This document shows positions 1,955 through 15,400 of a stretch of 64,000 nt of DNA, in pieces. Under the pieces are notes generated by a model that was given only the letters and a program-made list of their open reading frames with translations, ran no database searches and was not told the origin of the DNA. The translations under genes were made by a program, and so were the position numbers. The stretch is from Guillardia theta CCMP2712 (taxonomy: Eukaryota; Protista; Cryptophyta). The stretch is from assembly GCF_000315625.1 (NCBI RefSeq), contig NW_005434621.1, forward strand, positions 268,246 through 332,245, read 5' to 3'. Positions within the stretch are counted from its first letter, which is position 1; each line of letters begins with the position of its first letter.

Positions 1955-3697
1955 ATGAGGATGATGCAGGAGCGGATTATAATCGGGCTGCAAGCATGCA
2001 GGCTGCTTCATGGCCTCCTTCTGTCAGCGCCCAAAGTGTTCATTCAGCCGAAGGACAGGCCAGCGAACGTGTCCGAGCCAGCATGTCGAGCTCAGGACGA
2101 CCTGGAGCGGTTCACGGGAGCAATTGATATCATCGAGCCCGGGAAGAAGGACCAGACCTTCAAGAAAGGACGGACGGACGGCGAAAGGTACCTCCTCCTC
2201 GACACGCTAGAAGTGCTTGCACCCCCCAGCAGGTCAAGGATAGCACGGCTGACCCTCTGCTCTTGGTTGCGCCCCGACGCTGCGCAGCGCCTGGCTCTGT
2301 TGCTTCCCTCGCTCACCAACCTTCTTCATCTGGACCTCTGGCATTGCGCCATCGGCCGCAACGGCGCTCTCACTCTTGCTGCTGCTCTCCCTCATCTCCC
2401 TCAGCTCAGCTTCCTGGGGCTTGGAGCCAACGGGCTGCAGGACGAGGGGTTCGTGATCATCGGCCCTGCTCTGCCCTCCTGCCCCTGCCTCCTTACCTTG
2501 GATCTTGCGGGGAATGAGATAGGAGAGCAGGGGGTAGTGGCGCTTGCAGCAAGTCTGCCAAGCCTGAGGAAGCTGAGTCATCTGAATCTGAGCTACTCTT
2601 TACTCCGTCCGTCCGGGTTTGCCGTCCTGTCCGAAGCTCTTCTTAAGGTGGACAGCATGAGGGAGATCGATCTAGCGCAGAATCGCATTGGCCAGCACGG
2701 CCTTGCTTTCCTCTCCTTATCCTCCTCCTTCGCCTCCTCCTCATCCTCCCTCTCCCTCACGCAGCTGCGCACCCTCTCACTGCGAGCAAACAGCTTTGGC
2801 GTCTCTGGCATCGACAACTTGGCATTCTTGATGTCGGAAGGGAACAAATTGGAATCTCTGGACTTCTCCTGCAATCACCTGAAGGTGGACATGAGCTTGC
2901 AAAGGTTCTCCTTCTGTATCGCCCAGTGTAGTCAGCTCATCGAATTGGACGTGAGCGGCTGTGAGATGAGAGGAGGAGAGGGCTTCCAGCAGTTTGCTCT
3001 ATCCCTGTCATCGTTCAAACTCCTCCGGTGCCTTGCCATTGGCTCCAACAACCTCGGGGATGCTGGCGTCATCACCATCTGTCGATCGCTGTCGCGTTCC
3101 TCAACTTTGACGTCCCTGTCGACCCCGGCGAACAACGTCGGGGTGAAGGGAGCAGAGGACATCGCATACTCGCTCTCCTCCTGTCCTCAACTTCACCTGC
3201 TCGACCTCTCTCACAATCGTGTGGGACTTGAAGGATGTACAGCCATCGCAGACCACCTGCTCTCCTCCTCTCTCTCTCACCTTCTCCTAGCGAACAACAT
3301 GCTCGGCAAGTCTGGTGCCCTCCCCTTGTTCGGCTCGTCTTCGCACCGGCTGGGCTGCCTCAACTTGAAGGGGAACATGCTGGGACAGGAAGGGGTCACG
3401 TCGCTGGCGTCTGCTCTCATCCACTGCCAGCAGCTGACGGAGCTCAACTTGTCGCAGAACACTATCAACGATGAAGGAGCGAGGGCCATCGCCACTGCGA
3501 TGACAAACTGCACAGCCTTGCAGCTGCTGGACTTGACGGTGAACATGATAGGGATGGAGGGAGCTAAGGCCATGCTGAGCAAGATCGCTGATTGCGTCAG
3601 TCTATCTCTTATCGATCTCCGACTCAACTACATAGGAACAGTTGGAACGCGGAGAGTTCGGGCGAAGAAGAACTTCTGTGATATTTTACTGCATTGA
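1955..3697 (+). CDS. Ribonuclease-inhibitor-like (NLRC3/RanGAP-type) leucine-rich repeat protein
   Basis: 580-aa ORF with many 28-aa repeats of the form LxxLxLxxNxIGxxGxxxLAxxL (e.g. LTELNLSQNTINDEGARAIATAM). A short 5' exon from ATG 1906 is possible. Confidence 0.9.
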   Translation: MRMMQERIIIGLQACRLLHGLLLSAPKVFIQPKDRPANVSEPACRAQDDLERFTGAIDIIEPGKKDQTFKKGRTDGERYLLLDTLEVLAPPSRSRIARLTLCSWLRPDAAQRLALLLPSLTNLLHLDLWHCAIGRNGALTLAAALPHLPQLSFLGLGANGLQDEGFVIIGPALPSCPCLLTLDLAGNEIGEQGVVALAASLPSLRKLSHLNLSYSLLRPSGFAVLSEALLKVDSMREIDLAQNRIGQHGLAFLSLSSSFASSSSSLSLTQLRTLSLRANSFGVSGIDNLAFLMSEGNKLESLDFSCNHLKVDMSLQRFSFCIAQCSQLIELDVSGCEMRGGEGFQQFALSLSSFKLLRCLAIGSNNLGDAGVITICRSLSRSSTLTSLSTPANNVGVKGAEDIAYSLSSCPQLHLLDLSHNRVGLEGCTAIADHLLSSSLSHLLLANNMLGKSGALPLFGSSSHRLGCLNLKGNMLGQEGVTSLASALIHCQQLTELNLSQNTINDEGARAIATAMTNCTALQLLDLTVNMIGMEGAKAMLSKIADCVSLSLIDLRLNYIGTVGTRRVRAKKNFCDILLH

Positions 3698-3786: not shown

Positions 3787-6700
3787 TCAGACATCAATGA
3801 TGTCTATGGTCTCCTGCTGCCATATGCTTGACAGATCTCCCAGCTTGGAACAATTTCTCATGACTTTATCTTTGCTATCACTTCAGCCCTTCTGTACAGC
3901 TCACGAACTTCTGCGATGCAAGAGGCCCTCGACGACTTTCCTTTGACGTCAGGCAGAGCCATCTCGGCTTTCGCTTCTCTTGTCTCCAACACTCTCACTG
4001 TCGCATTGTCTTCTTTCTGATCAGCGAGGAGGAGCAAATCTGTAAAGTTTGCTCCTGCTGACAGCATGAAGGATTTCAATCCCTGCGCTACTCGGAACTC
4101 GAGCATGAGCTTCTTGTGACCGCCGTCCGCTACTCTCTCGATTCGGAAGGGAAGGTACGAGGTAAAATTCGCAAAATTTCCCGTCCACAGCAGAAGTGGA
4201 GGATGTGCCATTTCTTGCTCCTCTTTCTCTCGTTCTTCCTCTGCCAAGTTCTGCAGACATGTTAGGATATGTTGCAATGATCTCTTAACAGCTCACAGTA
4301 ATGAGCTCGATGTTTAGAATGAAGACATTCTTTGTTTCTCCAACAAACTTGCTGTGCTTGCTCTTGACCTTGCTCCTTTTCAACTTTGCCGCAACGACTT
4401 CAAGGTATGCTCCACGCTTCCCCCTGCTCAACATTTAAGATCTCACAACATGCTCAGTTCTCGCTACGCACAGGCTTCGTTGGTCCGGCAGCTTTTCGAG
4501 CCACGTGCTGTCAGCTTGAGGAGCAGCCAGTCCTTTGATGATCGACTCGCCCTCTCCTCGAAACATCTTGTTGATGCTGTCAAGTACCTTTCCCGCGAGC
4601 CTCAGCGACAGAGGGAACCATCTCAAGTTGAACCTTCATGTCGTCGAAGACTCCTGCGTTGATCGATTGCAAGACTGTTGGAAATGAGAAAAGTTTGCCA
4701 CTCATTCTCGTCAACACGTAGATGTGATATCTAGCATTCTGTTTCGAAGACTGTTGTCACAAGAACAATCTCGGAGCAACAAGCTTCACCTTGGACATCG
4801 CTTGCATGGCCTTGCAGAATCTAAGGGCAGCCGAACAATCTTGCAGGAAGCTGAGCATGTAGGAGGACACAGTGGAGTTCTGTAAGAGCAGCGATCATAC
4901 ACGAGTCTCTTCTCTTCGACATCTGAATCACCTCAGCCTGTTCCTTTCTCTCTCTCAGTCCCTCTATCAAACCCTCTAGCTCGCTCAGCCCCCCTACCTC
5001 CACCCTGTCGAAAGGAACCTGCCGCCTCCTGTCAAGTGTCTCTCCAGGAGCTGCCTGTACTACCTCAAGACGTCTCTCCCAGTCTTCGCAGGTTGCTACG
5101 ATGTTGGACAACTCGAGCAAGTGCTTGGAAATCTCTCGCAGCTTCTCCGATATCGCTGCTCCCATCTTACCTCGTGTCAATCGAACATGACGTCTCTACC
5201 TGGGTCCATCGCGTTGAGAGAGAAGAAGCTATGGATCTCTTGGATCTCCTCGCTCTTCGCCTTTATGTCTATCAACTCCTCCTTGTAGTTCTTCAGCTTC
5301 GTCTTCATCAGCTGGACTCCTCCTGCGGTCACTTTAGCCTCCGCATCTCCTCTCGCCTCCCGTCACCTTCGTCCAGCGACAGCTTACTGATGGCAATCTC
5401 AAAGGGAATCAGCCTGGCACACGTGTCAAGCTACTTCCCAGCTCACGCCCACCCACATGTTCATCATCTCGCTGTCCGAGTCCAGCTGAACGGATTGAGC
5501 GCTCACTGCCTCCCTGGCTCGTGTCGCCATGTCCACTATGACCTCTCGCAGCGACCGCACCTGCTGCTGCCGTTGCAACAGCTGCTGGAAGCTCAAGTCA
5601 TCCGAGGACGCGTCTGCAAAGCAGTTGAGGGTGAAGTCAATCTCCGAGAGAGCGTCGTCGATGAGGACGGTGGAGGAGGCTCGCATGAGCTTGAGCAGGT
5701 TCGGCGTCCTCTCCTTGAGCGTCAGCTCTCTCACTTGCGTCTCCATTGTGTCTGTCAGCCAGTCCAGCTTGAGCGTCAGGGCCGTCGACAACTTCGAGCT
5801 GCTGCTTGTGTTGAGGAGGAAGTCAACGTCCACAGACTGCAAGTCGCGGTTGTCCGCCTCCAACAAGTAGAACTCTTGACCGAAGCAGAAGGTCGAGATG
5901 ATGTGTTGAGCTTGAGGCAAGATGAGCACCTCTTGCCAGTCCCCTGAGCTTGCATTCAGCACAAACACATCTCTCAGAGCATTCTCCTGCACGTCCATCC
6001 CCCCGCACACGAAGATGTAGTTGTCATGACGGCAGAGTATGAAGGCAGTGCGCTGGCAAGGAGCCTTTCCCCTCGTCTGCAGCTTCTGAAACTTCACGTC
6101 CACCTTGTTGGTGCGCAGAGACATATCTGAGTCCGACTTGTGCAGCGGCTTCAGCCCAGCAAGACAGACGTCAAGGTCGTCGCAGCCTCCGAAGATCACA
6201 AACTTGTCTTGCTGCAACGTGACACTCTGCCGCATCGTCCACGTGTTGGCGTACGGCACGAAGTTCAAGAGCGCAAAGACCAGCAGGTTTTCTTTCTGCA
6301 CGTCCTTGTGGATGCTCGCGAGCAGAACTGGCTCAGCAAAGTTCTCGTACCTGGGCCTGACGACATACTCTGAACCCGATCGGGACGGGAGGCGTGTAGG
6401 GTTTGAGGGTTCGTACGCTTCATACCAGCCTGCCAGCACGTTGTCTTTCATCTCCCCCAGCTCCTTGTCCAGCTCGGCTGGCGGCTGCCACTTCTGCTTG
6501 CAGGACCTGGAGCTCCACCCCCAGCCATCGGGTGTCGGGCGGACATGCTGAGGGATGTTGGACTCACCGAGGAAGGTCTTGTTGCTCAAGATGAGGAAGC
6601 TCTCGTCCTGCTTCCCGACCTTGGTCTCTCCTTTGAGCTCGAGGACGAACACGACGTTGGCAGAGTCGTCGCGCTTCCGGAGAAAGGAGCTCATCACGCA

Positions 6701-9700
6701 GACGGCGTGCTTGTCTGAGAGCGGCAGGACCTGCTCCACGTCTGAAAGTTCAAAGTAATCCCCTAGAATCTCTGCGGTCAAGAATCCTGTCGTTGCGATC
6801 CTCGACTCTGTTGTCACCATGGCTTGCTGCCTGGTCTTGTTGACCAGGAGGAGGTACTGACCGATGTTAGCGAATGTCAAGTTCTCGCTCTCCTTCAACG
6901 AGCTCTTCAACCCTCCGGCACTTGTCTTGACCGCGCTGTTCTTGGAATAGTACGTCACCATGGGAGAAGAAGAGATTTCAGTCGGTTCCGAGGCCTCGAC
7001 GAGCGAGATGGAGATGGTATGCTTGCCGATCTCGAGAGGGATCAGGGTGATCTCATACGTCCCATCCTTCTTGTCCTCGCAGGTGCTCACAACATCAGCA
7101 GAGGGTCCACTGATCGTCACCTTCCACGAGTCTCCGCCAGTTCGTCTCTTCTTCCCCTCCTCGTCACATGCCTGCACCACAATCTTGTTGGGCACTCCCA
7201 CGTACCCGCCGTGCAGCCCTGGCCCGAAAGCAAAACATCTCCCAGCACAAGTGTTCTGCTCATGGCTGGACCGCACCAGCTCTCGATATTCCTGCAGACG
7301 GGCAGCGACTTCTTCCTTGTCCTCGCACCTTCCTTCCTCCCAGCACCGGCAGGCAGCCATGATTCCCAGCTCCTCCTCCAGCCCGAGCACGTTCTTGGCC
7401 TCGAAGCACGAACGAGCATTGGACAAGGCGCGGTGGAACAGCTGAGAGTCTCTTGCGCGTGCTAGAGCCAGAAGCTCTTCGCTCACGTTCCCGACCCAGT
7501 CCCACAAGTCCTGACACAGCTTGTCCAAGGCAACATGCTCCAATCTCCACCTATTTGCTGTCCTGAACGAGGTCAGAAGCTGTTGTACACCAGTCAGACG
7601 CGAGTCATCATAAAATAAGATTACCGAGGACTTGTGCATTTCTATCTCTCGCTCGATTGCTGTCAAGGAAAATTCTTTGTCGACATGTTTCTTATACTCT
7701 TCAAAGGCGTTGAGAGTCCTGATCCAACATTTCTCCATCATCTCCTCGCGCAAATCTGTCAGGAACTTGGTGTTGGAGAAAGTATCGATCAGTCTGCTCC
7801 TGTTGGAATCCGCAGAGCCAGAGCTCAACGTCTCGATGGTGGAGAAGAGTGTTAGCTGAACTTGTATGTCTTCTCGCTCCAGTTGGGCCAAGACGTCGTT
7901 CAACTGCAGAAGAGTATCACAAAGTTTGCTCATCAACCTGATAACCTTCAGTACCTCACAAAACTTGCGCCATACTCTGTCGTCAGACAGCGAAGAGACG
8001 TCGTCAGAGATGTTGACTAGAGCTTCATAACAATCAATCAGAGCTGAGAAGGTGACATCTTCCCTTGTCCACTTCATCGATCTTTCCTCCAAGACAGGCT
8101 GCTGAGGTTTGTACTTGTTGTGATATTCATCAAAGACTGCTGATCTAGTGATGAATTTGTCGCTGTCCTCCTCTAGCAAGGCCAGTCTCATTGGGTAGAG
8201 CACTTGGAGATGAAACATGATCTTGTAGTGCGACAGTGCTGACACGTTCGAACTCCCGCCATGCCATCTCCTCTCCTCGCTCAGAGAGGCTGCGATGCGC
8301 TTGTAGTACCTCTCAACGTCCTTGTGCTGGGCAAACTTGGACAGCAGGCTGATGTCGTACATGCTCGCATGGTCGAGGCTGATCAGACCGTTGAGGCAGA
8401 AGGAGCTCCTGAGCAGCGGGGCCAGGAGAGTCACAAGGGAGAGGAGGCGAGAGTGAGTGACTTGGAGCTCGAGCAAGGGAGGGAGCTCGAGCCGGGTCAG
8501 GTGAGTGAGCGAGTGAAGGCTGAGGGTTTGCCTGTTGCAAGTTAGTCAGGGCGAGTCAACAAGGAAGTGGGAGCTCACGGAGAGCATGCGACGAGGACGC
8601 GGAAGACAGCTGCTATCACGACAGGATGCGTCTCAACGGTATGAGCGAGCAAGGGGATCATGTGCTTGACCCACAGCCCCTGCAGCTTCCGGGTCGGCGG
8701 CATGTCTGAGATCTTCTTGCCGCATTGCAGGGACAGCAGCGCGTGCGCGAGGTAGAAGCGAAGGTGGGAGGGATTGCCTGCCTTCTCCATCTTGCAAGCC
8801 CACTCTTGTATCCCCTTCCTGTCCTCGCTCAAGTCCTCGGGCACGTGCAGGTCTATGAAAGCAGCGACTTCAGGGGCGGAGAGCGAGGGGACCGGGAAGA
8901 CTTTGCTGGCTCCTTGAGGAGATTCAGGATCAGCTTCCTTCTCTCGGACACCCAAGAGGACGGTCAGCCTCGTCGGCAGCTGCTCCTGCTGGATCACTTG
9001 CTTGGCCTGGTTGACAACCTGGAAGAGTTTGACTCGAAACGAATCTCTCTCGACGTCTGCTACCACAGAAATGTTTGTTCCTCTCCTGAGAGCGCTGAGA
9101 ATTGCTGCTAGAAGTTCAGATATGATCGTTGCTGAACAAAATGAGCTGGGCTGAGTCCGCAACGACTTCATCTCAAGTTGCAGCAGCATGAGATAGAACA
9201 GGAAAGAGTCCTCGTAGTCAAGCTGATGTACGTAAACAACAGACAAGTCTTGGCTCCGAAGCCCCTTGTCTGACATGAGATGATTGGCCAGGTGTGAGAG
9301 GATGGTAGTGATGCCGCAGCCTCGCATGCCTTTGATGACGATCAACGATTTCTCCTTACACTCCATAGAGTTGATGTACTTCAAGATGTCATGAACAACT
9401 TTGTATCTCGGCTGGTCCATCAGCTCTAGAGCCTTCCTTGAGGTCGACAGCATGTAACGATTCTCAACTTCCATCTCAGCAAGTGCACAATGCGGCACAT
9501 AACACTTGCCCATGACAGGTTCGCACAACTCAACAAAATCCTTGAAGCGTTGAGCAAGCTCAGTCATGCTGTTCTCAATCTTCAGAGTGATCGGCTCTTG
9601 CTCCTCCTGCTGTTTTATTGCCATCTCCTGCTGCTGTAACTTCGCAGATTCCAACTTTTCGCTGATCATGTCACACAGCTCCTTGTAGTCTGGCTCGACC

Positions 9701-12700
9701 TGCAGCAGCAGCTGAAGGTCTTCGACGTTCCTTGACTCTTGTTCTATGAACTCGGAGAGGCTCTCGAGCAGCTGGGGGTTTTGCTGGGCTCTTCCAATGG
9801 TCCCTCGCTGGGAGCGTCTGTACAGCACGTGGCGAGCTCTAGAGCTCTCAGCTTGCGAGGGTTCCAAGTGAGAGGAGAAGATCTTCTCTTCATTGCCTTC
9901 AAGCGTCTCTTCGCTTCTCACTGCCAGCACATGACCTTCGAGTCCTCCCAGCATCATCGTCAGATCCTTGAAGCTCTCGCGCAACGTCGTTTCTTCACTT
10001 CCAATTTCAAAAGCGCACAAGTCTGCTTTAGACATGAAACAACACACCTGATCCAAGTCAGACAAACAACACCTCGACTCTGATCTTACCTTTTTTCTGC
10101 TCGACAACTCCTCGACACATCGACAAGATTCTTCTTGCATCACGTCTTGAGGAAGCGGCAGATGTTTTTGACTTGAAGCTGATCCTATCGAGTTGCAAAG
10201 ATCGCGAGTGTCCATGTTGAAGGAAACGTTTCTCTGTGAGCAGACAACTTGCAGACACGGGTCGAGGTATCTCTCGTGAAAGATTCGCTCTTCTTGGAAC
10301 TCCTCACCCATGAAAGAAACGGAGTAGGAGAAATGATTGGGATGGTTGATACAAACAGGTTGGGGCACGTGGGAGTGATGAGGCAGAGCAGTAACAGCAT
10401 GTTTGAGCACTAGAGTGTTGAGCAATGAGACTGAGTTACCTCCTATCACTCGTCGAACGTGTTGTGCTCTCAGGAAGACTCGTCTTTGCTGCTTCTCCGG
10501 CAAGAACTCCAACAGGACGCGGTTCCAAGTGGAAGAGATCGATTGAATCACGAAATGACGTGGATGCAGGTTGAAGAGGCTGAAGAGGTCGAAGCACAGG
10601 CTTCTGCACAAGGACTCCTTCGATCCGAACTTCCGCTTGTCTCTATCACAGAGAGCAAAGTCCAGGTACAGGAACACACTCCTAGCTCTTGCCTGCACCT
10701 CGACTACTCTCAGGGGCTCTAGAGCTCGTTGAAATCTTCCTCCTCGCTCCTTCAACGCGTTCAGGGTCGCAGGCTGCAGGCTGCACATCGAGAGTCTCGT
10801 GTCGGAACAGCTGAACCAGAGGTAGACCCTGCCGTGGTGCTGCAGCCCTCGCAGCAGCTCCCAGCTGACCCCGTCGCAGCTCCTGTCAAGCGCCGCTCTC
10901 ACCGTTGCGACCATGCCCTCCCCCAGCTGCTGACCCTCTTGCGCCTCGAGCATGAGGAGGAGACATGTCACAGTTTCCCTCTTGTCCTCTCCCAGGAAGT
11001 CTGCGGCAGCCACCAGATACTGATCCGCTCCCCCTCCCATCCGAACCTCCAGGGCTGCCAGGTGTGACCCTTCCCTGCTGGACCCTTGCTGGGGTGAGCT
11101 CAGCTGTTGCTGCAGCAGCGCCTCAAGTTCAGGGTCCATCTCGAGCAGAGGACGGAAGCCGAGCCTCGACAACCAGCGGAACCTAGCATGCATCCTCAGC
11201 GCCAGGAGCTGATGCGAGCCAGACGATCGCTGAACGTCTCGTCTCATCCTTGAGATCACGTTCTTGACATGTTCGACTCCTGCATTCTTGCTCTCTATGG
11301 CTAACCTGCAGAATGCTTCGAGGTCATCAGCGTCTCCTTCCAAGAAAGAGACAAGCAGAGCACAGGCTTGCGACAACTCAGATCGAAACTGAGCGCTCAC
11401 TCCGTCATGAGCTTGAGCAGCAGCAAGGCAGGACTGCAGGAGGAGCAGAGCTCTGCTTGCCCCCACCTGCCTCATCAGCTGCGCGAGGAAGATGAGGTTG
11501 CAGGTGCACATCTGAAGCTCAGACCACAGCCGGCACTCTAGCAAGACGTCAACAACCTGCGAGATTCTCGTCCTGCTCAGATACTCGAAAGTCCCCAGGC
11601 CCTCGGGGTCGGAGTCAGCCAGCAGCCCTGTGATCATCTTGCTTCCCTCAAGCGTCCTCACGTGCTCCTGCAGGCTCGCCTGACCTTTCTTCAGCGCCAA
11701 GATGATCTGAATGGCGTCTAAGTTCCTCAGGTTCCACGCCAGCTGCAGGGCATCCCACCCGTGGAAGTCTTGGATCGCGTAGTCCAGGTCCGTCTCCTCC
11801 AGCAACTTGCGGATCACGGGGAAGTTTCGCTCCCCGATCGCGTAATGGAGGCTGGTCCATCGGAAGGAGGGGAAGCAGACAGTGAGGTTGACCTTGGAGC
11901 TCTTGATCAAGTAGTCGATGCTGTTTCTGTGCAGAATCGCCTCCGCCATGGCTGTCCGACCCTCTGCGTTCAGCAACTGAGGGGCGATGCTCGCGTGCGC
12001 TAGCAGCAGCTCCATGGCATGGTCATGTCCCCTCTTGGCCGCGAGATGCAGCGCCGTGTCAAGCGTGTCAGCCGTCTGTATGTTGGGGTTCAACTTCCAG
12101 TACTTGCTGAGAAGCAGCTCAAGGCTCTCGTGGTGCTTGCTCGATCTTTGAGACACGTGCGCATCGCCCTTGCCCTGCTCAAGGAGTATCGCCGTGTGCA
12201 GAGCTGTCAACCCGCGGTCATTGAGCTTGTTCGGATTCAACTTGGGTACAGTGCTGACGAATCTGAGGCTGCTGATGGCGGTAGATGACATCATATGATG
12301 CAAGATGGTGTTCTGATCTGAGTCTAGCATGTTCACATCAGCTTTTCTCTTGACCAGGTACTCGACGCCCTCCACGTTGTCTGACGCTGCTGCCACGAAC
12401 AAGAACGGGATGTTCTCATCACTGACATCGTTCGGGCTCACATTCAGACTCTCAATAATCTCTTCCATGACCTGAAGATTTCCTACTCGCAGCGAAAGAT
12501 CAAATTCCACGTTCCTCATCGCCAGGATTTTAATTTGGCCCGACTCATTTTGAGCCTCCGTGAGAAGTTTTCGAGCTCTTGTCAGATGTTCCTGCACATC
12601 TCGTGCGAGCTTGTAGCTCTCTTGTACTTGTACATCATCCCCTGTGAAGCAAGCCTGCCTCAAGTTCATCGCCTTCAGCTTGTCAACCGCGATACTCTGC

Positions 12701-15400
12701 TGGACTGTCCCGTCGAGCTCCTTGTGGAGGAACTCGATCTCGGACTTCAACTCTCTCGCGAGCCTCCTCTGCGCCTCCACCAGCTGCTCCTCCTCGTCGT
12801 CAGCATTGACAAGCCCATCAGCGATGGACGCGAATCGGAAGGCCTGCCAGAGCTGCTGGATCGTCGCGTAAGCATCCTTATAGGAGTTGTCGTCGATCAA
12901 GCTGCGAATCTGAGCCTCCAGGGCCTTGAGCATGCTGGTGAACTTCTCCATCAGTTTCTGCTTCAGACTCTCTGCTTTCAGCACGAGATCCTGTCCTGCC
13001 AGCCCGACCTTGGGCTTGAAGAGAAGAGCAGCCTGCGGCAGGAAGCGAGTCAGAGAGGGAGAAGGACAACATGTCAAAGGCCCTCACCGCGATCTCCTTG
13101 GCGCAATCGAAGAAGTTCTCCTCGTCGAGAGAGATCCTCGCTCTCGACACCACCTTGCTCATCGCGCACACGTCCTCCTCCAGCACCTTGATCCTCTTGT
13201 CCAGCTCCTCCAGTGCTGGAAGCATCCCTGGTTTATGCGCGGCAGCTCCACAGCTCTGGTACAGCTCGAGAGCGTTGTTCCAGAACCGCCTGAAGGTCGT
13301 CAGCGAGCCGTTCCTAGCAGCGTCTTCAGCTTGCTTGTGGCAAGAAACCGCCATCTCCAGCTGGTACACGTCTCTCTCCACCTTCTTGGCGAAACTCTCG
13401 AGGCTCACCCGGTCGTTCTGACCTGCGGCCCCGGCCTGCACAAACGCGTCTCGAGCCTTCGCCAAGAGGGTCTGCGCCTCTTTCAGCCTGCCCTCCCCCC
13501 TGTATCGCTGAGCCTCCTGCAGCGACTTGCGCCCGAACTCACAGCAGTACCGCTCGTCATGCTGGCTTCGGATCAGCAGCCCGCACAGCTCCGACAGCTC
13601 CTCGGCATTGAGATCGCCCGTCGCCGACATGCTGATCCGATCGTCTAGCTCATCCAGCACCTGATCCTCGAAGTTCTTGGCAGGCTCGGAAGTGACGTGG
13701 TAAGTTCCTTCGGATACGAACAGAGAGGGGGATGCTCCGAAGGCACCCAGAGGCTTTGAGATCATCCTGTGCTTCATCTTCTGGTACACCATGGAGAAGT
13801 TCATGGTCTTTTCGATCGAGAACTTCTCTTCCGCCTTTGCTGCTTCACTTCCGTTTGTCTCATTGAGCCGATGCTCATCTGAGATGTCCTCTACCACTGG
13901 CAGACGTTTGTTCTCCTTCAATTCTTTTAAGAATTCTGAGATGTTCCAGTCCATCTTCATGACTACAGCCATCAACTGACGGAAAGTTTGACCATAGATC
14001 ACATGAGAGTTGCTGCTCTGAGCATTGAGAAACAAGGTGATGGCGTCTATGATAGCCTGGTTGTTAGTAAACTTCTGTTTGCAAGCAGAGATCTCATGTT
14101 CGATTTCTCGTTTCTTCTTCTCTATCGCAGGCTTCTGCTCCCCCGACACAATCCTTTCCGCTTCTACCGCCTCCTCAAGCTCCCGCGCTGCGTCCTCCTG
14201 CGCAACCTTGGCCTCTTTCAGTTTGCGGTTGGCACCGGGCCAGCCGTACTGTAGCGCGCTCTTGGCTTCAGCGACCTTCTTCTCTGCGATCAACTCTGCT
14301 TCATCTGCTTCTTGCCTCTCCTTCCTCGCCTTGTCGATCCTAGTCTGAAGCTGCTCTAGTTGGCTCACAGTCTTTGCAAGGGCTACTTCCTTCTCCTTCA
14401 CATCCGCCTCGATCCTTGAGTTGGAATGCTTCAGCGTCTCCAGCTCTGTCGTCAGCCACAGGTGAGAACAAAACTCTCCGAAGGCTCCTTCAATATGGCT
14501 GCTCAACCCGTCGAACTCGTGTAGGAACAAGTAGATCTTTCCGATCTCCTTCGCTATCTCTGCAGCGAGCTGGTACTCAGTCAACCCACGAAGCGCGACT
14601 ATCTCTGAGACCGATCGTGATATGACGATGCGTTGTCTCTCAGAGCTGGAAGGCAACGCGGACCTTGGAATACCTCTTTCGCTGTGATACTTCAAGCTAT
14701 GTAGTTGTCTTGCCTGTAACTGAGGGAGCTTGAAGAAGTTTCTGACGTGTATGGCCTTGGTTGGTGTATCTAGTGAGTGAGCGTTGAGAGAGCTCTTCGT
14801 TCTCATCGCGATGTCCTCTAGCACATGAGCCGGCTCAAGTCGGATCGGAATGTCAAACCTGCAGACATCGATCTCAAACTTATACGCCAGCAACTTCTCG
14901 ACTTTCAGTTTGATCTGAGACGCCTCCTCATCTAGTTTGATTCTTCGCTTCAACGGGCTCTGTTGATCGGATGATGAGATCTCTGCAAGGTTGTACATGT
15001 CCTTTCTTCTCTTCGAACCTGCTGCTCCATCCCCGCGCTGCGCGTTAGCGATTCTGATGACGGAGAAACTTCTTGCGCGTCTCTGAACGTCCATCAGGCT
15101 CCCTCGCTTCTTCCACCAGTCATCTTCAGCCTCCTCCTCTGCTGCTGCAGCACTTGTACGTCCGTCCTCCTCCTTCTCTCCCTCCTCTACCATCTCTGCC
15201 GGCAGAGGAACGGCTCCAGCACTGACGCTTCTCCGCTTCCCTCGCTTGACTGGCTTCAGCTTTTCCATGGCTGTCTGAGCTCGCAGGCTCTTGTGAGGAT
15301 GGGCAGCAGGAAGGAAGACAGGAGTTCCCATCTTGTACTTGAGCCCTGCTCGCCGCAGCAGCAGCTGCGTGTACGAGGTAGCCTCCTCCTCCTCCGCCAT
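3787..15400 (-). CDS. Giant multidomain protein (about 3,600 aa): coiled-coil/helical N-terminus, ankyrin repeats, NPHP3_N/DUF4062-like segment, degenerate NACHT-like P-loop, filamin repeat, kelch repeats, dynein-tail-like C-terminus
   Basis: ATG at 15400. ORFs 12878-15439, 8575-13077 and 5426-8476 join in frame through introns 13033-13087 and 8532-8578; an in-frame 42-nt intron lies at 10048-10089. Ankyrins at about 11700-12420 (GLTALHTA, DTALHLAAKRGH, WTSLHYA); filamin at about 7010-7250 (FGPGLHGGYVG...DKKDGTYEI); kelch at about 5920-6200 (IFVCGG...DVFVLN...W). The small 3' exons and the stop are tentative. Confidence 0.75.

Follow-up and report, generated by a model that had tools for sequence, protein, structure and literature searches.

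The 64,000-nucleotide (nt) window analyzed here (contig NW_005434621.1 of the Guillardia theta CCMP2712 assembly, positions 268,246 to 332,245) carries on its minus strand three long open reading frames (ORFs) that appear to belong to one giant nuclear gene. The gene is predicted to run from 15400 to 3858 of the window with at least four short introns and several small 3′ exons. Its product would be a divergent NLR-like protein of the NIR/DUF4062 plus STAND type, in which a former switch has decayed to a scaffold in cryptophytes. This is the reading that we favor and hold to be probable, with real room left for the alternatives weighed below.

The ORF listing gives the three frames as 853 codons (15439-12878), 1500 codons (13077-8575) and 1016 codons (8476-5426). 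ORF1 and ORF2 have 200 nt of this strand in common, and fewer than 100 nt separate ORF2 from ORF3. The original prediction had joined all three in frame across two introns, and its coordinates and frames for both proved exact when splice sites and frame arithmetic were worked out by hand from the printed sequence. Removal of these GT-AG introns gives the in-frame coding joins 15400-13088, 13032-8579 and 8531-5453 (Table 1); the exon 1/2 and exon 2/3 joins are referred to as junction 1 and junction 2. Translation is assigned to start at the ATG at 15400, and the ortholog from Hanusia phi begins at the same Met. Exon 2 opens on a codon boundary at 13032 and ends in phase 2, with base 8531 completing the codon in the ORF3 frame. 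Intron 2 has a branch-like site, CTGACTAAC, upstream of its acceptor, and a TGA inside its donor terminates ORF2. Exon 2 encodes, in order, a coiled coil, ankyrin repeats, a conserved helical middle, a DUF4062/NIR-like remnant, a linker and a P-loop nucleoside triphosphatase (NTPase)-like domain.

ORF3 conceals two further introns, which leave it open since each keeps the frame and contains no stop; they are revealed by exact gaps in the Hanusia alignment, and with intron 3 removed CE-LNDVLAQLERE lines up with CEVADVIAEVEKE. Near 5452 both cryptophyte ORFs become V (GTN) at the same aligned position. Beyond this point a codon-usage dynamic program chains about seven small exons, the last at about 4250-3858 with its stop codon at 3860-3858. 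This last exon has weak homology support (residues 3494-3549 of the distant homolog P0051, described below, against 4190-4035, E 0.18, collinear), and no Pfam match was obtained with the small 3′ exon pieces. The original prediction of small 3′ exons extending the protein to about 3,600 residues agrees in length with the present model, which plausibly gives a product of about 3,650 residues with exons reaching down to 3858, but the chain itself is ab initio, which tells against this part of the model.

An alternative intron 2 acceptor at 8409 would give an in-frame intron of 170 nt that drops a CT-rich stretch. It was rejected, and the acceptor at 8532 favored, because the CT-rich stretch downstream is coding: exon-3 residues 16-59 match P0051 residues 1974-2017. 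The stretch itself (8409-8531, minus strand) looks of low complexity and is conserved at the protein level with these same P0051 residues. The in-frame acceptor at 8409 could permit alternative splicing that drops 41 codons.

Database and family searches were run exon by exon, on single exons. A word search returned one true relative for each exon, the Hanusia phi EukProt entries P0049 (763418-Hanusia_phi.AAC.8), P0001 (AAC.9) and P0048 (AAC.10). The three entries are consecutive, and their identities to exons 1, 2, and 3 are 72–73%, 55%, and 54%, respectively; similarity to P0049 spans the whole of exon 1, and P0001 covers 98% of exon 2. An exhaustive search of 1.84 billion representatives with exon-2 residues 475-1484 yielded only three proteins at E ≤ 1e-3: P0001; P0050, a fragment of 950 residues that aligns with exon 2 over 900 residues; and P0051, an unannotated protein of 3,887 residues from another organism, on a single 28-kb NCBI contig. 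P0050 and P0051 are 34% identical, and each is 25–35% identical to the G. theta protein. No annotated G. theta protein was returned by the homologous-protein searches within the length windows used. By these comparisons the family is rare and old, conserved but undescribed. The original prediction knew of no protein with this domain order, which holds for described proteins, but undescribed relatives exist in Hanusia and in the P0051 lineage.

P0051 aligns with all three ORFs in order. Its residues 4-335 match exon-1 residues 441-770 (35% identity, E 6e-53), 336/338-968 match exon-2 residues 2-605 (28%, E 6e-66), 1148-1292 match exon-2 residues 756-889 (BLASTP E 5e-08), 1974-2017 match exon-3 residues 16-59 (E 2e-5; tblastn E 0.002), and 2456-2928 match exon-3 residues 427-884 (E 7e-26). 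Junction 1 is crossed between P0051 residues 335 and 336 with no residue missing or extra. The order of parts in P0051 (coiled coil, ankyrin repeats, conserved middle region, DUF4062-like segment, P-loop, filamin, kelch) is that of G. theta, with ankyrin repeats at 532-814, AAA_22/AAA_16 at 1684-1838, Filamin at 2457-2559 and Kelch at 2814-2925. P0051 begins at the equivalent of exon-1 residue 438, after the DA1-like stretch described below, and carries a further ankyrin block near its C-terminus. The single-gene architecture first proposed from the ORFs is thus found in one protein, and since P0051 is collinear with all three ORFs, the interpretation that they form one real nuclear gene, not a chimeric artifact, is strongly supported.

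The Hanusia record could instead suggest that the locus comprises three or more separate genes or cistrons whose in-frame joins are coincidental. Its three entries are cut at or near both junctions: AAC.8 stops six codons after junction 1, AAC.9 begins at a Met 27 codons after junction 1 and terminates precisely with the stop codon of the intron 2 donor, and AAC.10 begins about 80 codons after junction 2. These entries therefore document conserved adjacency with no spliced read across either junction, which weakens the case for one transcript. AAC.8 reads V-S-A-I past junction 1, however, and V-S is what an unspliced GTGAGY donor would encode. The introns at both junctions have the canonical ends, GTGAG at the donor and CAG at the acceptor, and are short, like the two further introns within ORF3, and the overlap and close spacing of the ORFs leave no room for promoters. 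Together with the unbroken P0051 protein, continuous across junction 1, these features make separate genes very improbable. Breaks in the Hanusia record coincide with G. theta introns 1 and 2, and G. theta introns 3 and 4 are missing from it, as would be expected if the data set came either from transcripts with incomplete splicing or from ORFs called before introns were removed.

The NLR-like assignment of this single gene depends on two segments of exon 2. DUF4062, also termed NIR, is a TIR-like NADase that in eukaryotes neighbors the NACHT ATPase in NWD1, NWD2, TEP1, TTC41, and NPHP3 (10.64898/2026.09.04.749371; 10.64898/2026.05.01.722283). The original prediction had recognized by eye, in SVSFMGEEFQEER..., the N-terminal DUF4062-like motif of NPHP3, TEP1, and NWD proteins. 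A four-member family alignment of 67 columns around YSVSFMGEEFQEER...NVSFN was compared by hhalign with six genuine G. theta DUF4062 domains, and the resulting match (probability 84.9, E 6.5e-6, score 35.9) bears the recognition out. In 100 column shuffles the score was 10.5 ± 2.1 with a maximum of 19.4, placing the real score 12 standard deviations (SD) above the shuffles; DUF4062-like recognition is therefore supported for the first strand-helix-strand. A hidden Markov model (HMM) of the six domains ranks the four members of the giant-gene family 1–4 of 54, each at the collinear position, and P0051 aligns to it over 87 columns that include GDRYG. In P0051 this motif is followed by an acidic S-C-L-E-D-E motif. 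The G. theta and Hanusia proteins are without the GxRYG segment; a C-V-E-E or R-V-Q-E stretch may match the acidic motif, in a part where the alignment is unreliable.

A whole-genome scan of the G. theta assembly (87.1 Mb, 669 contigs) with the Pfam DUF4062 model PF13271 placed eight other loci above cut-off, the locus of the giant gene not being among them. Seven of the eight were retrieved (contigs C11, C87, C49, C35, C160, C1, and C54) and encode typical DUF4062 plus NACHT-like proteins. The genome thus has at least eight DUF4062/NIR loci. Several of them fall within open frames of 1,500-4,000 codons and have NACHT-like GKT/DG motifs downstream, a pattern suggestive of an expanded family of giant NLR-like genes in G. 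theta.

The P-loop was also seen in the original prediction. It is present but degenerate: the Walker A site at 9330-9304 reads GMRGCGITT, with Ile in place of Lys. Motif states were taken from a local alignment of three sequences only, local slices being used since a global MAFFT alignment of the window fragments with full-length P0051 misaligned P0051. In P0051 Walker A is intact (GGPGAGKT) and the Walker B site reads FLLDG; in G. theta the sites are GMRGCGIT (Lys to Ile) and VVADVE; and in Hanusia they are GNSGSGTS (Lys to Thr) and VVNAE (Asp lost). A common "LS..E" motif, sLSapE in G. theta, follows at the expected distance after the Walker B site. Because the Walker A Lys is gone, the Hanusia Walker B Asp is lost, and GxRYG is missing, the cryptophyte module most likely no longer hydrolyzes nucleoside triphosphates (NTPs) or NAD+, and the P-loop domain is most likely catalytically decayed in cryptophytes.

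The P-loop domain is probably of STAND type. Seven Pfam models of STAND or related families match the Walker A region of G. theta at E 0.006-0.1, all below cut-off: NPHP3_N (the best, E 0.0056, 17.3 bits against a cut-off of 24.8), AAA_14, nSTAND6 (16.6 against 27.7), nSTAND3 (16.2 against 27.2), nSTAND5, ATPase_2, and NB-ARC (12.3 against 23.5). P0051 yields AAA_22 (E 5.5e-4), AAA_16, and NPHP_N matches. The ten best named clusters in the ESM Atlas are all STAND NTPases (scores 0.84-0.87), which we treat as a lead only. Comparison with three Guillardia NWD-type NTPases by hhalign gave E 6.7e-6 over 35 columns only. In an AlphaFold2 (AF2) model of the NTPase piece, built from a two-sequence alignment, the strand-helix order fits a P-loop fold at a predicted local distance difference test (pLDDT) score of 43.5. 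The tripartite order of NIR-like segment, P-loop, and helical region followed by filamin and kelch is identical in G. theta, Hanusia, and P0051. No paralog of the P-loop domain was found elsewhere in the G. theta genome, and the region just after the NTPase, at the helical/winged-helix position, had no Pfam match in the exon-wise scan.

Several results pull in the other direction. No curated STAND or DUF4062 model exceeds its cut-off on either the G. theta protein or P0051, and PF13271 (cut-off 24.7 bits) has no match at E ≤ 1 on the G. theta piece. The hhalign match to DUF4062 is confined to 43 columns at the start of the domain, its N-terminal half, and STAND similarity stops at the Walker A strand-loop-helix. 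An HMM of four G. theta NWD-type NTPases finds fungal NACHT and misses the giant-gene family (E 0.8). Both AF2 models obtained (pLDDT 43.5 for the NTPase piece and 34.5 for the spacer and kelch region) are too poor to judge folds. The "STAND-like" label of the original prediction consequently stands as sub-threshold matches at Walker A, but no model passes its cut-off and the NWD-type HMM misses the family.

These results would suit a central domain that is a generic or other P-loop NTPase, for example, AAA_22/ORC-like or KAP-like, with a convergent DUF4062-like match, so that the protein would be a multirepeat scaffold without NLR ancestry. The best Pfam match in the intact homolog P0051 is indeed AAA_22, which alone spans about 125 model positions where STAND models span 30–80, and a phmmer search of the PDB returned nothing for the NTPase piece. 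Convergence would nevertheless have to account for a NIR-like match that lies upstream of the P-loop, at the expected place, in all four family members, far above the shuffled controls, and that in P0051 runs through GDRYG. Seven of the eight sub-threshold Pfam matches on the G. theta piece, moreover, are STAND or STAND-related AAA models, as are all ten of the best ESM clusters STAND, and the P0051 Walker B LLDG is followed by the "LS..E" motif at its expected distance. We regard this generic P-loop interpretation as unlikely, though a serious competitor to descent from a NIR-STAND protein.

The other domains are more firmly identified. Ankyrins, a filamin immunoglobulin-like (Ig) repeat, and kelch repeats, all seen by eye in the original prediction, were found by Pfam above curated cut-offs. 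The ankyrin region gives Ank_2 at E 6.8e-23 (81.5 bits, four stretches), with Ank_4, Ank_5, and Ank also above cut-off, and PDB ankyrin and DARPin matches cover ORF2 residues 193-469. The Ig domain matches PF00630 (E 4.7e-14, 53.4 bits against a cut-off of 26.9) and Dictyostelium gelation factor (1wlh, E 3.4e-21). One or two kelch blades are detected by Kelch_6 (30.3 bits against 25.3), Kelch_1 (28.5 against 20.1), and Kelch_4, also above cut-off; Kelch_KLHDC2_KLHL20_DRC7 reaches E 9e-11 and is under its domain cut-off. About 240 residues upstream of the blades are β-rich (AF2 model of spacer and kelch from a two-sequence alignment), and the blades probably belong to a divergent β-propeller that begins in this spacer. 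The ESM Atlas gave no usable match for the post-ankyrin middle region.

Exon 1 contains a DA1-like domain that was absent from the original list of modules. PF12315 scores 26.3 bits on ORF1, borderline against its cut-off of 25, and 24.5 on the slice; Hanusia P0049 carries a precomputed PF12315 annotation. The PDB phmmer search with exon 1 gave nothing useful. The zinc site of DA1 peptidases is HEMMHX15EE (PMC5322733). At its position G. theta has HEFDG...IEG (HEFDGLSSHIEG) and Hanusia NEFDG...VEG (NEFDGLSSNVEG), neither of which conforms to this pattern. Since the HEMMH zinc site is replaced, the DA1-like domain would be a pseudo-peptidase.

The filamin and kelch parts bear on a possible link to dynein. 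The original prediction had named a "dynein-tail-like" module and tied the protein to the axoneme or cytoskeleton. The head of the third outer-arm dynein heavy chain (Chlamydomonas alpha) is a propeller-Ig-Ig assembly, with a second propeller in cryptophytes (PMC12338079). When the filamin-to-kelch region was searched against the G. theta genome, filamin genes on contigs C6 and C31 ranked first, followed by loci on C24 and C47 that sit just upstream of DHC_N2 matches and are therefore taken as alpha-heavy-chain-like dyneins. Besides itself, the kelch segment alone found only the N-terminal part of the C47 dynein (E 1.5e-4 and 0.54). By hhalign, the C24 N-terminal ORF matches in the Ig domain only (E 1.4e-16), the rest not being significant, and the C47 ORF pieces match in kelch (E 1e-8 to 1.5e-6) and Ig (3e-8). 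The same two kelch blades match blades in three different C47 ORF pieces, out of register; the similarity is therefore at the domain or repeat level, not collinear. The genome scan placed no DHC_N2 match within the giant gene. A distinct dynein-tail module was accordingly rejected: the segment so named reduces to a filamin Ig and about two kelch blades of generic similarity, with no collinearity to the alpha heavy-chain head.

A functional version of this idea would make the protein an axonemal or dynein-associated adaptor. Its arm of filamin Ig and kelch would have a specific relationship to the kelch/Ig docking head of the third outer-arm heavy chain (Chlamydomonas alpha, Tetrahymena gamma) and would anchor the protein on outer-arm dynein or the doublet. 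The C47 and C24 matches above speak for it, the C47 gene being the only other genomic match of the kelch segment, as do the type of the best Pfam kelch model (KLHDC2/KLHL20/DRC7) and a weak PDB match (E 0.057) to 8glv_Eb, a "flagellar associated protein" of the axoneme. Yet the same two blades pair with varying partners in both dynein propellers, alignment to the C24 gene is limited to the Ig domain, and the Ig domain is closer to the two non-dynein filamin genes than to the dyneins. The order also differs, being propeller-Ig-Ig-propeller in the dynein and Ig-spacer-kelch in the giant protein. On this balance an axonemal adaptor is doubtful, and the dynein matches, being out of register, leave the axonemal or cytoskeletal tie of the original prediction unsupported. 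Less probable still is a specific common ancestry of the filamin-kelch arm and the kelch/Ig head that, in Diaphoretickes, took the place of the N-terminus in the third outer-arm dynein heavy chain. In that case the family would be a relative of this docking module without a motor, or a candidate for its source, and would connect the outer dynein arm with an NLR-like switch of the NIR/STAND kind.

At two G. theta loci, G000:C24:452000-460000 and G000:C47:444500-453500, DHC_N2 is thus closely preceded by pieces of filamin-Ig and/or kelch. The genome may contain two genes for dynein heavy chains of the alpha (third outer-arm) type, where PMC12338079 lists one accession. A further dynein heavy chain, with an open frame of 4,263 codons (G000:C53:233375-234613, DHC_N2 E 8.9e-128), shares a contig with the giant gene and lies about 34 kb ahead of the window, an observation of proximity only. 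Within the window, positions 1955-3697 of the plus strand hold an ORF of 580 codons with ribonuclease-inhibitor-type leucine-rich repeats, a separate gene on the opposite strand that runs toward the giant gene's 3′ end.

Table 1. Predicted exons, introns, and protein domains of the giant gene, in window coordinates
Feature	Coordinates	Strand	Basis
Coding exon 1, 771 codons; conserved N-terminal region, DA1-like domain, long coiled coil, helical region	13088..15400	-	ORF and homologs
DA1-like (clan MA peptidase-like) domain, active-site motif lost	14321..14707	-	PF12315, 26.3 bits
Intron 1, 55 nt, GTGAGG...CAG, phase 0	13033..13087	-	Sequence; P0051 ungapped across
Coding exon 2, 1484 codons + 2 nt	8579..13032	-	Alignments with Hanusia P0001, P0051, P0050
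Ankyrin region, about 7-8 repeats	11668..12495	-	Pfam and PDB matches
DUF4062/NIR (TIR-like) remnant, first strand-helix-second strand (YSVSFMGEEFQEER...NVSFN)	10216..10344	-	hhalign
P-loop NTPase-like domain	8833..9360	-	Walker A region, sub-threshold STAND matches
Intron 2, 47 nt, GTGAGC...CAG, phase 2	8532..8578	-	Sequence; in-frame join
Coding exon 3a, helical region after NTPase	7955..8531	-	Hanusia and P0051 alignments
Intron 3, 51 nt, GTACTG...CAG, in frame, stop-free	7904..7954	-	Exact 17-residue gap in Hanusia P0048
Coding exon 3b	7625..7903	-	Hanusia alignment
Intron 4, 45 nt, GTAATC...CAG, CTGAC branch-like site, in frame, stop-free	7580..7624	-	Exact 15-residue gap in Hanusia P0048
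Coding exon 3c, helical region, filamin Ig, beta-rich spacer, kelch blades, coiled coil; 3′ boundary approximate	5453..7579	-	Hanusia P0048, P0051
Filamin/ABP280-type Ig domain	6962..7252	-	PF00630
Kelch blades, about two recognizable	5921..6238	-	Kelch_6, Kelch_1
Small 3′ exons and introns, about 400 codons, uncertain model	3858..5452	-	Codon-usage dynamic programming

Under the preferred NIR-STAND reading, the core of the protein would comprise the TIR-like DUF4062/NIR remnant, a linker of about 290 residues, and then a STAND-type P-loop NTPase, the pairing of NIR and NTPase being that which defines NWD1, NWD2, TEP1, NPHP3, and TTC41. An upstream arm would be formed by the DA1-like peptidase-fold domain without its HEMMH site, coiled coils, the ankyrin block, and the conserved helical region. 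A downstream arm of helical region, one filamin Ig, a kelch-type propeller, and a coiled-coil tail would occupy the position of the WD40 propellers in NWD proteins, TEP1, and APAF-1. In the ancestral form, which P0051 with its intact GKT, hhhhDG, and GDRYG may represent, the propeller arm would keep the NTPase off until ligand binds; nucleotide exchange would then drive oligomerization and gather the N-terminal modules, as in APAF-1. The motifs that are intact in P0051 are lost in both cryptophytes, from which we infer that the switch became a scaffold. With its module predicted to be inactive, the cryptophyte protein would probably be a static multivalent scaffold that acts through its ankyrin, Ig, kelch, and coiled-coil parts.

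Comparison with known systems shows both shared and divergent features. As in NWD1, NWD2, TEP1, NPHP3, and TTC41, a TIR-like DUF4062/NIR segment precedes a P-loop NTPase, after which come a helical region and a repeat arm of β-propeller type; the module is also placed as in TEP1, far from the N-terminus and within a very large protein. Unlike in these proteins, the DUF4062 and NACHT/NPHP3_N matches of the giant protein are below cut-off, G. theta retains only the first half of the NIR fold and lacks GxRYG and the Walker A Lys, and the two segments are separated by the long linker. Filamin and kelch also take the place of WD40 or TPR, and the DA1-like and ankyrin arm is added upstream. The layout resembles the APAF-1/NLR switch in having interaction or effector modules at the N-terminus, an NTPase in the center, and at the C-terminus a propeller with the potential for autoinhibition; it differs in that no CARD, PYD, or TIR effector was identified in the giant protein and in the predicted inactivity of the cryptophyte NTPase.

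Plant CHS3/DAR4 is an NLR with an integrated DA1-type domain (10.1101/2022.06.21.497003), and the giant protein likewise appears to fuse a DA1-like peptidase-fold domain, with a PF12315 match at threshold, into an NLR-type protein. In contrast to CHS3/DAR4 and the DA1 peptidases, no LIM or UIM was found in the giant protein and HEMMHX15EE is replaced; the DA1-type domain is N-terminal here and C-terminal in CHS3/DAR4. Ankyrin-NACHT proteins (fungal HET-E-like NLRs, animal ANK-NACHT proteins, and TANC1/2) also combine ankyrin repeats and a STAND-type P-loop in one polypeptide, and they are the only non-orthologous database matches of exon 2, through its ankyrin part. Their ankyrin repeats, however, lie C-terminally, directly after the NTPase, whereas those of the giant protein lie about 750 residues upstream, and the similarity is confined to the repeats. 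The third outer-arm dynein head (Chlamydomonas alpha; G. theta XP_005834820; PMC12338079) shares a filamin-type Ig and kelch blades with the giant protein, which differs in being without a dynein motor, in the order of its parts, and in a similarity limited to single domains or blades.

The analysis provides a usable corrected model for a very long and apparently unannotated or mis-split Guillardia gene. As judged from sequence, it has no present bearing on flagellar biology, no direct evidence having been found that ties the family to the flagellum. DUF4062/NIR-NACHT proteins such as TEP1, NWD1/2, and NPHP3 were recognized as TIR-like, NADase-bearing, and NLR-like only in 2026 (10.64898/2026.09.04.749371; 10.64898/2026.05.01.722283), and the giant protein would add a new architecture to them, with a DA1-like and ankyrin arm upstream and a filamin and kelch arm in place of WD40 or TPR. 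The family also offers a natural comparison between a switch and a static scaffold: the P0051 lineage keeps GKT, DG, and GxRYG, and the two cryptophytes have lost them.

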